A stretch of DNA of 64,000 nucleotides from contig LSRY02000006.1 of the NCBI GenBank assembly GCA_001643675.2, positions 1,178,001-1,242,000 of the forward strand, in the 5' to 3' direction. Under the pieces are notes generated by a model, which saw only the letters and a program-made list of their open reading frames with translations, made no database searches and was not told where the DNA came from. Position numbers and translations under genes: made by a program. This DNA comes from Monocercomonoides exilis PA203 (taxonomy: Eukaryota; Protista; Preaxostyla). Every line of letters starts with the position of its first letter. The first letter of the stretch is position 1. This document shows, one piece after another, positions 4,746 through 23,179 of the stretch.

Positions 4746-4916
4746 TAACGAAAAACAAGAACTCCGATTGAGTCCAAATGCTATATAATACTGAGTATGG
4801 TTTTGTTCTTGCTCCGAGTTGTATAAAAGGAAAATTTTTAATTACCGCGTATTTATTACTCTTTCAGTAAATTTACAAAAATTTCCCAAAATTTTACTGA
4901 TCATATCAAATGTTTG
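4746..4916. promoter_or_regulatory. Putative bidirectional promoter between the thioesterase and INTS11 genes
   Basis: Divergent ATGs at 4745 (-) and 4917 (+) have only 171 bp between them. TATA-like TATATAA at ~4782 and TATAAAA at ~4822. Confidence 0.5.
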
Positions 4917-14722: not shown

Positions 14723-17700
14723 ATGTTTGATGAAAAAAACAATTATTCTCTTCGAAATATGAATTTATTAAGTACTGAAAAAGAAACAAAAGTTACCTCA
14801 TTTGAGGAATTTATTTTCTCTCTCTTTTATCCTTTATACGATCAGGTATTAACAATTTCATAAAAAATTATTTTTTGCAAATAATTTACAAATTTTATTT
14901 TCAAAATATAAAGAAAAAGAAGCAGAGATCTATATGGCCCTTTGTTATGTGGTTGCTGGTGACATTACAACTTGTTGGATTATCATTTTATCAAGTTGAT
15001 GCTTCAACAGATAATATTACACTTGGAACTTATTATTCAGGCTTTTTTGATGGAAGCGTGTATCCTGTATTACTTGGACAAAATTTTCCTTATCTTATAT
15101 TCTCTGCAATATTCATATTAGTCTTTCTTATCATCTTGCTGGCAATTTGTTCAATTTTTTACAAGAACTTCTTTGGAGCACAACCGTGGGTTCTTGCATT
15201 TCTTCGTGCATCTTTCTTCGGAATATGTAATTTTATGTACATTCCATTTTTAGAGTTTTCCATTTCAACATTTGATTGCTACTCAAATAATGGAGGCTAC
15301 ATAACCCGTGCGGGTCATATTGACTGCTTCAAATCAAACGCACTTCAGATATCTTCTTTTATTTGTGCAGTAATTACACTCATTATGCTCGTGATGATGG
15401 TGCTTGCATATCATATATTTATTTTCAAACACAATCCCAAGAATGGTGGACTATTTTCATGTTCTTCAGGCTCATTCAGTGGGTTAGAAGTAATTCTTCA
15501 ATGCGTTTTAGTATTTGTGATGCGAATGCTACATGGATGGTATTTCTGGAGAGGATTTATAACCGTCGCGATTTCTATCTACTTGATATTATGTGCTTTG
15601 GACGACCAACCTTTTTACTCATATATGAGCAATGCTTTAATTGTCGTTAGATATTCAATGTTTGGCGGTATGCGTCTCTGGAACGAACTTGCACATCTTC
15701 TCGAGCGCATAATGAAAGAACAGAATGCAATCAATCCTGGCTACGTGTTTCCATTTGTCTTCTTTGCCGGCATTGTGATCAGTATTGGCACAACTATCTT
15801 TCTATGCTGGCTTTTGCGGTTCAAAAAAAAGAAGATGTGGCTTCTCAGCAAAGACGGGCATCCACTGGTGGATGTGAGCCAGATTGACCCTCCTCTGAAG
15901 AGTAACCTATCGTCGCCCCGCGCAATCGTACTGCCGCAGTATGGCCAATCAGCAGGCCCATCGCCTTCTTTCTCTCCTGTTAATTTGAATTCTTCTTCGT
16001 CGTCTTCCTTATCATCATCTTTGTCTTCCTCTTCTCTTTTGCCTCAAACACTTCCCAAGCTGAAACACGCACACCAAGTCGAGCCATCTCTGCGCTTCCT
16101 TCAGGAACGTTCATTTCGAACGCCACAGATGATGCTGTATGCAGACTATGTGTACCAGCAAGGCTTGCACAGACACCGCAGCTCGCCCCGCCTCCACTTC
16201 GACTATGCCTGTTTCCTCTTCTACTTCATGAAGAACCCGATGAAGTCCAGCGTCACGTTCCGCCAGCTGCGCCTGCTGTCGCCTCCGTTTGCGATGAAGT
16301 TTATTCTCACCTGCAAAGAGAAAGAGGCCGGGCGAGGAAACAATGAAGGCGGCTCCAGCGGAAGCGGAACAGAGCTGACGTCCATCATCTTCAAGAGCAT
16401 CCTGACGCACTCAGAGGAGCTACATGAGGAAGCAAAAGTTACACTGAGAGAGTTCTGGGAGAACATGACACTGCAGCACCCAAACTTCTCAGTCATTCCA
16501 TCGCAGCTCACTCGCATTGTTGACTCTGAGGAACAAGCAAGACAGGGTTTTGAAGAGCTGCTGAGGGCGCAACCGCATAATGTGCAGATTCTTCGGATGT
16601 ACGGGCAGCTGCTGCTGGATATCTATCACGAGGAAGATACCGCCGAAATTATATTTGCGCAGGCAGACCAGCTGGAAGAAGATTCAGCGACTTCGACTCA
16701 GATCGGGATGATGACAGCATCAATGACACTTCCTTTATTGGTGGATTCTTCCTTAGCTCAGTCCACAACACCATTTCAAATCACACAGGCAGGCACACAA
16801 GGAGGAATGCATGTGAATGCGGGCGCCATCCAGCCAGGAAGTGAAGGCAGACACCCAGAACTTGTGTCTTCGCCTTCGATGCCAGTGAACCAAATGGCAG
16901 CAATGATTTCTGGGGGTGTTGCACAGAAGGAAGGAGAGAGGAAAGAAAGAGAGAGAAGAAGGGGGATGAAGAAAAAAGCAAAGAAAAAGAAGAAAAACAC
17001 ACTGTCTTCGCAGTTTTCTGACTTTGTTGTATCTGGGAAAGCACTTAACAGAACACACGATATCTTCATCACTGCGATGATTGCAATAGTGTACTTGGTG
17101 TATGTGATTGTGCTGGTGACGTTTCTCTCCGTCTTTGTGCACGACACCGACAAATACATCGTTTCATTGCACAACCTCCGCTCGATGTGCACAATCTGCT
17201 CTTCGACAGCGCTCTTTGCCGTCGACTCGATGCAGATGCTTGTGCACGACAGAGACTACGACTGGCAGCGGAACGAAGACCCCACACTCACAATCGACAC
17301 TCTCTCAGAGCTGCAGCGCAGCATGCGCTCAAAGGCAGAGGACACAGCACTGAAGATACAGAGCACGTATTCAAACACAAAGAACACAGACGTGTGGGAG
17401 GAAGTCAGCATCCCCTTTTACATCATCTCGTTCAATGAGACCACCAACAAGATCATCAAAATGATTGAGCAGTCGCAGTCGCTGCTTTCGTCGATTGCGT
17501 ATCTGACGCAGAATGTCAGGCTGCTCGGCACTGTTGCAGAGCCGAAGAGCGAAGTGAGGCAGTTTGGCGAGCACCTCATCACAATCATCTTCAACTCGCT
17601 TGTTCCTGTGATCGATGCAGAAAAACTGGCGATGAAGAAATACGCTGACGACACGAACAAGATCTTCAACACTGCACTATCGACTGTGATATGTGCGGTG

Positions 17701-20700: not shown

Positions 20701-22515
20701 CCAGCTACTTCTGGATTTCCAATGATACCTATGCAATATCCAAACACATCGTTTAATCCTCCCCAGGTTCAGGCGCCTCAAATGACAATGCAGACAGTTT
20801 CAGAAAAGATTGAAGAAGAGTCTGCAAAGACATCCACTGCGATGAATGAAAATTTGCACCATCTGTCTTCTGCGAAGTCCACTGATCCGCTTATCAATCC
20901 ATCAGAACCTGTTTATTTAGGCCGCCATGAAGATGAAGACGAAGAAGATGAAGACGCTCATAAGTCAGATCTCATCCGCAATGCTTTTGACGATCACAAG
21001 TGGGAAGAAAAATTGAATGCAGAGATTGAAAAACTGGCAGTATTTTACAAGGAATTTCCTTCTCCGTTCACACGAGCAATGCGAGTGAAGTTCATAATTT
21101 CTGCGCTTCTGTTCATTGTTCTTGGTTCAGTGGTCTTAATAGTTGCACTAGTCATAGCCACATCTCACGATGCTTATCCTGACACCTTGATGATCTCTGG
21201 AATGCGCTCTGCTGTTCTCTCCACAATCCGCTACTTCTTCATTCGCATGGTACACATTTACGCAGCTGACATCTCAGCTATTGAAAATGTCAATTTCACC
21301 CGTTCAACAAATCCAGTGTGGAGGAACGAGACGCACGTCACATCCGACAGAGAGATGCTGAAGCAGCTGATGGCTGATTCGTCAGACTACTTCCAGACGC
21401 TGGTAATGGCGGTGCACTACGGCGAATCTGCAGACTCCAAATCAGGAGACAGTCTCTTCGATACAGTCTCAACACACCACGCATCGACCCAAATGAATGC
21501 TGACACGCTGCTACGCACAGGCTCCTGCTTTCTGGAAGACAGCACACGATGCAGCACAGAACCTGTGAGCGAGAGGATATTTGGCATTGAAGGCGATTAT
21601 TTCGGTGTAGAGTCGCTGCTGGCGAGAATGCGTCTGTATATTGACTATATACAATTCTATGACATGAATGAATTTCCGTTGCCAATTGATGCAAACTGTT
21701 CATATTTCAAGTTTATCAACTCGGCTTTGAAGAATGATCTTACACAAGGAAATGATGTAATCACAGATATTTTGTATGAGCAGGGCGTTGACTTTGTCAA
21801 AAACTTTAATAACACATTGACCATTGTTATAGTCATCTTTGCAGTGTTCTCATTTGGCTGGTTTCTGTTTATTGTTATTCCACTCCGAGGCTCTGCAATG
21901 AAGCTCCATCGAAACACAGATCGACTCAAAGATCTCTTACCAACAACCAACGAAGAGAAAGAGATGAAGCTGATGCCAGCTATGCAAACAGGACTTGTGA
22001 AATGGGATACAAACCACGAGAAAATCATGGAAGCTGCACAGACAGTTGTTCAAAGCATTAAAGAAGGGGAAAGCATTTCAATCATAATGCAAGCACATCA
22101 GTCTCTTCTTCATCTTTGCAAGAATATATTTGACAGCGAAGAAAATGACATGCTTGAAGCAGAGATTTTGAGTGATGACGAACTTGAAGCGCACAAAAGA
22201 GAGCATCTTCTGATCAGGCAAAGATTATCAGTGCTTTACGAGCAAATGCAGTCTTGGAACGATGCGATACTGATGGCATCCAAAAGGTCCCTTGTTCGAA
22301 TATTTGACAAGCATTTCACTGTCGATGATCAAATGTTCACTCGATATCAAAATGTGGCAGAGGATTCAGTCAACGACGAGGAGCATTTTGATGAAAATCT
22401 CTCGTCAATGATTGTGGGGGATATCAGAGGGATGAAGGCGGATAATTCAGAAGTCGAGCAGAGTGCAGAAGGTCGAGCAATGGAAGGAAATAGTGACGAA
22501 TCTGGTAAAGATTGA
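14723..22515 (+). CDS. TmcB/TmcC-like polytopic membrane protein (~2574 aa) with a TPR-like helical region, two TM-flanked extracellular domains and a C-terminal hemerythrin-like domain
   Basis: Exon 1 (14723-14845, ...FEEFIFSLFYPLYDQ) splices across intron 14846-14913 into ORF 14875..22515. There are about 8 N-terminal hydrophobic segments. YADYVYQQGL..H, LREFWENM and FEELL..QPHN.QILRMYGQLL.DI match what I recall of the TmcB/TmcC-family helical region. Further TM pairs lie near 17070-17750 and 21090-21880. C-terminal motifs are TG...WDTNH, F..EE..M, HKREH and HFTVDD. Confidence 0.75.
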
Positions 22516-23179
22516 GATTATCAAGATTAGTTGCGTTGAAAGTTCCTTTCAAACATTTCACGTGCGCTGCATTTCATGAAAAATGCCTTAGTATTTAAGC
22601 ACTTCAATAATATTTAGCCTCTATTCTTCACGAATTCTTGAATTCACATGTGGATTTTGTTCTATAGATAGATGTATATTTTTCGCTTTTTGTTTCATCG
22701 CTTATGAATATTTTCGATAATTCTTTATGTTTCTTGTATGATCGTCTTTGTTTTTTATTGTGCATAGACACAGAATATTTCTTATTTCTGTTCTGTGATT
22801 TCACACATTAGTGAATGTTATGTATTTTCAGAACAAACATTTTCTTTCATTTATCTTTTCAATCACATAACTATTTTCGTTTATGCCTTCAAAGCAATAA
22901 TTTTTCACAACAGCATCGTTCAAAAGCAATTCTTATAATTGTTTTCGTATTGAAGTTTTTGTGTCCAAACCTTTAAGCTAATGCGATCGCAATTTATAAG
23001 TTTTTATTTTTCTATTTTTCATTTTCACTTGTTTTGTCCAAAACAAAAAGATTTCAAACAAATTGTTCAAAGACGTAAAACTTAAGTATAACTGCATAAT
23101 TATTACATTGAAAAAGAAATGAAACATAAATATTTTACGAAAAATATTTAAACTTAACCATTTCACAAAAAAGATAAAT

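Follow-up and report, generated by a model that had tools for sequence, protein, structure and literature searches.

MONOS_2207 of Monocercomonoides exilis encodes a multipass membrane protein of the TmcB type, the C-terminal domain of which is a true hemerythrin by both fold and homology. The domain has six of the seven metal ligands of classical hemerythrins, lacking the His at position 54, and it belongs to a large family of similar fusions in which the metal site has been altered to different degrees. Reversible O2 binding is doubtful for this member; the arrangement is consistent with a receptor-like protein whose cytosolic tail may hold a single metal tightly and report its occupancy or oxidation state.

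The C-Terminal Hemerythrin Domain

An earlier note made from the bases alone had placed a hemerythrin-like domain at 21982−22350 of the window (the whole 64,000-nucleotide stretch of DNA analyzed). The motifs it quoted are present and in frame with the long ORF at 14875−22515 (+), and the position is correct, but the domain begins slightly earlier (about 21961−22362, + strand). The family profile, an HMM of non-oxymonad hemerythrins and a modeled four-helix bundle all agree on the identity of the domain. A profile of 39 paralogs matches the Methylococcus bacteriohemerythrin (McHr) with an E-value of 3.5e-18 and DcrH with one of 2e-15; the MONOS_2207 tail scores 45.8 bits against an HMM of 88 non-oxymonad hemerythrins, while 1000 shuffles reach 10.2 bits at most. 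The spacing of the six ligands occurs once in the whole ORF and in 3 of 5000 shuffled tails. TIGR02481 matches the tail with an E-value of 3.4e-9, under its curated cut-off, as is the NF033749 score of the domain; PF01814, the family proposed for a check, does match (E 0.003) but under the Pfam cut-off, and a single-sequence search against solved structures returns no match for the domain, a profile being needed to obtain one.

AlphaFold modeling of the domain gives the anticipated four-helix bundle with a pLDDT of 95.7; the helices span residues 13−34, 39−67, 72−96 and 101−133 and follow an N-terminal loop. The best structural match of this model is DcrH-Hr (TM 0.85, Z 17.5, rmsd 1.9 Å, 129 aligned residues), and hemerythrins fill the first 14 rows of the VIA-align ranking, with Z from 15.2 to 17.5, unrelated bundles ranking below; as the input alignment included intact hemerythrins, the model backs the fold and not the metal geometry. 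Judged by its sequence, the domain descends from bacteriohemerythrins. It is followed by an acidic, unconserved C-terminal tail and the stop codon (22363−22515, +).

Metal Ligands and the O2 Pocket

Ligands are numbered here as in Phascolopsis hemerythrin, and window coordinates are codon starts on the + strand. The six ligands counted in the earlier note are found as His25 (H2409, 22015), Glu58 (E2450, 22138), His73 (H2468, 22192), His77 (H2472, 22204), His101 (H2508, 22312) and Asp106 (D2513, 22327); the His54 position is occupied by Ile2446 (22126), leaving 6/7 of the full set H-HxxxE-HxxxH-HxxxxD. In classical hemerythrin three His hold Fe1 and two hold Fe2, Glu and Asp bridge the irons, and Fe2 is the site of O2 binding (PMC9388753). 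O2 binding by the MONOS_2207 domain is doubtful because the lost His54 serves the O2-binding iron and residues of the O2 pocket are replaced. The hydrophobic pocket of hemerythrin consists of Ile28, Phe55, Trp97, Leu98 and Ile102; MONOS_2207 retains Ile28 and Phe55, has Ile in place of Trp97, and has Phe in place of both Leu98 and Ile102 (codons 22303 and 22315, +).

The suggestion that the HQSLLH motif supplies the missing His fails, the motif being out of register and poorly conserved in the closest paralogs. Its His at −10 from position 54 lies ~21 Å along an ideal helix from Glu58 and occurs in 1/4 of these paralogs; the His at −5 faces the opposite side of the helix and occurs in 0/4. Another residue near the site, Cys51, lies on the face of helix B that is turned toward the metals, but an ideal helix would place it a full turn too distant (~10 Å from Glu58), and it takes the place of Thr, Ala or Val; the simplest reading is therefore a small core residue.

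Gene Structure and Genomic Context

The public protein XP_067733886.1 (2574 aa), mapped back onto the window, corresponds to MONOS_2207 as a gene of two exons. In the public model exon 1 (14723−14845, +) has 41 codons and a further in-frame ATG at 14759; a 68 nt GT-AG intron follows (14846−14913, +), for which an alternative AG at 14924−14925 would also preserve the frame; exon 2 (14914−22515, +) comprises 2533 codons and the stop, and carries everything from the N-terminal TM bundle through the hemerythrin. The open frame at 14875−22515 (+) is a single one of 2546 codons, and the bases flagged as hemerythrin are its end. Four RNA libraries from a single study supply contigs, which indicate presence and neither strand nor level, that tile 16600−22590 almost completely, with small holes in single runs and free of joints and differences; one of them (19998−22474) bridges the last pair of TM helices and the hemerythrin domain without a joint. 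The contigs of two runs share an end point near 22760, ~250 nt past the MONOS_2207 stop, which is a possible transcript 3′ end. Against the four nearest paralogs synonymous sites are saturated; the dN of the hemerythrin domain is 0.31−0.58, lower than that of the neighboring module, and the domain is under purifying selection.

Exons of a MutS-family gene (MutS_V, MutS_III; 10949−14043, −) stand head to head with MONOS_2207, and a beta-CASP metallo-beta-lactamase nuclease of the CPSF73/Integrator type lies at 4914−7835 (+). On the other side there is a 7940-codon open frame (23180−47002, −) with only a weak TEP1 beta-propeller match (E 1e-4, far under the Pfam cut-off), as well as two adjacent long ORFs of 936 and 1057 aa (51134−57192, +) that have no Pfam match over cut-off and are possibly exons of one gene.

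The Membrane Chassis

MONOS_2207 has 11−12 TM helices predicted by hydropathy, both from the single sequence and averaged over the family, together with a TPR_TmcB domain, two outer domains and the C-terminal hemerythrin. The proposed TmcB-type multipass architecture is borne out by these helices and by a match to TPR_TmcB (PF25474; 16351−16689, +) at E 2.3e-21 and 76.5 bits against a cut-off of 27; this domain is predicted to be cytosolic. The Pfam scan of the ORF returns no cyclase (including PF00211), kinase or PAS match, as the earlier note had stated. Hydropathy places an N-terminal bundle of 7−8 predicted TM helices at 14941−15807 (+), which has ESM look-alikes in Preaxostyla, Heterolobosea and Parabasalia. 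Outer domain 1, with one N-glycan sequon, is flanked by a predicted TM helix on either side (17077−17748, +), and is followed by a linker of ~1040 aa (17851−20970, +) that is low in complexity and rich in Ser, Glu, Asp and Gln. The linker is unconserved, with a mean identity of 3−11% to 18 full-length relatives, among which its length varies from 150 to 1750 aa, and it is likely disordered.

Outer domain 2 repeats the TM-domain-TM layout (21103−21870, +; hydropathy and model) as a helical bundle with three sequons, a conserved Cys pair (21526 and 21550, +) and a conserved SGxR motif (21196−21207, +). The sequons and the conserved Cys pair indicate that the outer domains are luminal or extracellular; the TPR, linker and hemerythrin would therefore be cytosolic. 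A model of the last module has a pLDDT of 90.6 and a pTM of 0.62; it features one continuous helix (model residues 228−306) that belongs to the outer bundle, crosses the membrane as the last TM and reaches into the cytoplasm, ending ~8 residues before the hemerythrin loop.

The model of outer domain 2 resembles periplasmic sensors of the PilJ, NarX, NarQ and McpN kind (Z 12.2 to the PilJ sensor, 11.0 to McpN, 10.1 to NarQ), and PilJ is the nearest named family by ESM (0.86). These sensors share with outer domain 2 the placement of a helical bundle between two TM helices and a small-Gly-x-Arg motif that opens the first helix; outer domain 2 differs from them in its motif spacing, Cys pair and sequons, and in having no sequence or profile similarity. 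Outer domain 2 does not show the combination of profile match and P-box motif that marks the PilJ/NarX sensor family (PF13675): Pfam gives no match to the outer domain in 37 family members, and hhalign of outer domain 2 against one PilJ domain gives a probability of 0.3%. Homology to PilJ/NarX has no sequence-level support, and Z-scores of this size can be reached by chance for helical bundles; the modeled resemblance may serve as a lead.

The TmcB-Hemerythrin Family

A profile search of the M. exilis genome assembly (82.3 Mb, 101 contigs; PMC8767320) for paralogs, as the earlier note had proposed, returns 69 hemerythrin matches at 64 loci. At 60 of the 64 a TPR_TmcB precedes the hemerythrin by no more than 11 kb on the same strand, and 60 of the 69 TPR_TmcB loci have a hemerythrin at their end, both counts of fused loci being lower bounds; TPR_TmcB is upstream of none of the four cyclase loci. 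Long TPR_TmcB frames with no hemerythrin downstream are located at G000:C14:903833, C59:212712, C16:1084710, C19:828982, C29:815650, C67:169843 and C16:713100, and broken copies of the family have stops at C25:860543 and C47:219020. The fusion is also present in Blattamonas nauphoetae and Streblomastix strix, single Blattamonas members being named 'putative hemerythrin' in databases. One protein of B. nauphoetae (P0002, 3353 aa) contains the unit twice in tandem, with two stretches of TPR_TmcB and two hemerythrins, the internal one having His25/Gln54 and the C-terminal one Arg25/Val54; it may reflect a genuine fusion or the merging of gene models. The best non-oxymonad matches are intact hemerythrins, and those examined show bacterial architecture or context.

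Ligands were scored at 41 of the 64 M. exilis loci. Seven have an intact 7/7 site, 27 combine Arg25 with a residue other than His at position 54 (one of these bearing a stop), six keep His25 without His54, and one has lost Fe1 ligands instead. This opposite loss is seen in L039 (G000:C30:943763-944092), where His25 and His54 are kept and His73, His77 and Asp106 are replaced. In a set of 43 further oxymonad domains whose site is not intact, the three Fe1 His and Asp106 are present in 43/43, Glu58 in 42/43 and Arg25 in 39, while position 54 varies freely; the five Fe1-side ligands are retained across three oxymonad genera. An RQR motif after His77 (22216−22224, +, in MONOS_2207) is near-invariant in this half-site class and missing from intact hemerythrins. 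The members with an intact 7/7 site are better O2-sensor candidates than MONOS_2207.

The Origin of His25

MONOS_2207 bears the signatures of the half-site class, namely RQR after His77, Phe98, Phe102, a non-His residue at position 54 and the loss of Trp97 and Tyr50, but it has His25. In a tree of 444 columns, from which positions 24, 25, 51 and 54 were removed beforehand, MONOS_2207 groups with four other genes in a clade (96/96) that comprises three His25 and two Arg25 members and lies inside the Arg25 group, and two changes account for the states at position 25. The same nesting is recovered when a tree of the domain is rooted on hemerythrins from outside the oxymonads (100/99, 95/83, 96/89), and forced Arg25 monophyly is rejected with a p-AU of 0.0015, a value that is optimistic as the hypothesis was framed post hoc after the first tree. 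Given the nesting in two trees and the AU rejection, His25 is most simply explained as regained, and in MONOS_2207 it probably was; several independent His-to-Arg changes at position 25 are the alternative. Simple ancestral retention of His25 is disfavored by the two trees and the AU test. In all five members a Trp precedes the His25 position by four residues and a Cys lies three residues ahead of position 54, both being invariant (codons 22003 and 22117 in MONOS_2207, +); the His25 members also have Asn24 and a loop insertion of 3 residues in common. Searches beyond M. exilis recovered no ortholog of this Trp/Cys/His25 clade, though they are weak, one having missed even a known paralog fragment of suitable length.

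Comparison with Known Systems

Among the closest known arrangements is DcrH of Desulfovibrio vulgaris (PDB 2AVK/2AWC), which has the same fold including the N-terminal loop and also carries its bacteriohemerythrin at the C-terminus, cytosolic on a membrane receptor. All seven ligands are present in DcrH, which binds O2 and uses HAMP/MCP domains for signaling (PMC9388753); MONOS_2207 in contrast lacks His54 and an MCP domain, has a Phe-filled pocket, and is built on a eukaryotic chassis of 11−12 TM helices. That chassis finds a parallel in the transmembrane adenylyl cyclases (TMACs) of Trichomonas (PMC2914791) and in TmcB/TmcC-type proteins (PF25474), which have 6−8 N-terminal TM helices, a conserved cytosolic domain, two TM-flanked extracellular domains and one C-terminal cytosolic domain in the layout of MONOS_2207, and which likewise form a large duplicated family with broken copies. 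TMACs end in a class III cyclase, whereas MONOS_2207 has a hemerythrin in this place and no PAS; homology between the chassis is suggested by the layout and the ESM look-alike in Parabasalia, rather than by an alignment. Eukaryotic hemerythrin folds are known to sense iron or redox state through labile iron in FBXL5 and in plant BTS/BTSL/HRZ (PMC12022348). These are soluble E3 ligases with di-iron centers, and FBXL5 has no significant sequence similarity to classical hemerythrins (PMC4919030), while the MONOS_2207 domain is membrane-anchored and of bacteriohemerythrin descent.

Possible Functions of the Domain

The earlier note had proposed an O2/NO/iron-sensing receptor; the hemerythrin on a TmcB-type membrane protein stands, while O2 binding is brought into doubt by position 54 and the pocket. 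The reading preferred here, rated about evenly between right and wrong, is that one metal is held tightly in the Fe1 site beside a weak or empty second site, and that the occupancy or oxidation state of the metal is what the domain reports. MONOS_2207 would then be a non-enzymatic receptor-like membrane protein with a cytosolic hemerythrin tail. His73, His77, His101, Glu58 and Asp106 would hold the one metal, probably iron; the second site, left with His25 and two carboxylates, would bind weakly or not at all, and reversible O2 binding of the classical kind would be absent. Arg25 of the relatives may stand in for the second cation, with His25 of MONOS_2207 restoring a partial site. Occupancy or oxidation state would most likely alter the N-terminal loop or the stability of the domain, and a change in the loop could be coupled through the long helix and last TM to the outer four-helix bundle, and also to partners at the TPR domain. 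Metal binding, metal identity, sensing and the direction of the signal are all inferred. In DcrH the N-terminal loop, which orders with redox state, is the proposed redox-dependent output (PMC9388753), and sensing of labile iron by hemerythrin-like domains has been shown for plant BTS/BTSL (PMC12022348). Some hemerythrin-like proteins can hold two irons with six ligands, which counts against the preferred single-metal reading.

A domain that is purely structural, carrying a constitutive single metal (Zn, Mn or Fe) or none, and serving interaction or dimerization as output with the outer helical bundle as input, can be entertained only tentatively. It occupies the site of the output domain in the transmembrane cyclases of Trichomonas (PMC2914791), the near-invariance of RQR in the half-site class alone is what a new binding surface would show, and His25 may be tolerated as a basic residue in place of Arg; however, the five ligands kept across three genera make a metal-free domain unlikely, and the intact 7/7 paralogs on the same chassis suggest an ancestral metal chemistry.

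A di-iron sensor of O2, NO or redox state, with the His54 position taken by water, Cys51 or some other residue, is considered unlikely. Six ligands including His25 are present, the closest structure, DcrH-Hr, is C-terminal on a chemoreceptor proposed as an O2 sensor, and non-canonical di-iron ligand sets are known from a P1B-5 ATPase (PMC9388753); a re-gain of His25, if real, would naturally be explained by selection for a second metal, and Cys51 is metal-facing, invariant in the five-member clade and encoded by both Cys codons. Yet position 54 is a non-ligand for which HQSLLH offers no substitute, Cys51 is far from Glu58 on the helix and occurs in the two Arg25 members as well, and the pocket has Phe98 and Phe102 and no Trp97. 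A bolder proposal, and an improbable one, is that in oxymonads the TMAC/TmcB chassis gave rise to ~60 metal or redox receptors by a swap to a bacterial hemerythrin, the second site then being tuned stepwise (intact, His54 lost, Arg25), with His25 re-evolved in the MONOS_2207 clade together with the nearby Cys, as a new His/Cys site that senses labile iron, NO or sulfide at the cell membrane. A decaying duplicate or an artefactual join of separate hemerythrin and membrane protein genes, which the broken family copies and the long unconserved linker might suggest, is very improbable and largely refuted by the single 2546-codon frame, the jointless RNA contig across the TM region and domain, the recurrence of the fusion at 60 loci and in Blattamonas and Streblomastix, and purifying selection.

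Significance

Hemerythrin sensors on bacterial membrane receptors and the TmcB/TMAC chassis of protists are both known already. The literature searched on hemerythrin with TmcB and 'tiny macrocyst', subscription papers aside, describes neither their fusion nor the ligand series, and the earlier note likewise knew of no characterization of the architecture. So far, hemerythrin in M. exilis has appeared only as an oxidative-stress protein acquired by lateral transfer (PMC6759080); in contrast, 60/64 hemerythrin-like loci found in its genome are tails of receptor-like membrane proteins. The sensing of oxygen, iron and redox state in anaerobic protists is largely unknown, and M. exilis is a gut protist without mitochondria. 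The TmcB-hemerythrin family provides a natural ligand series (7/7, 6/7 and 5/7) on one scaffold, in small soluble domains that are easy to express; within it, MONOS_2207 and its two closest relatives offer what looks like the recovery of a metal ligand once lost, which can be tested directly against their Arg25 sisters.
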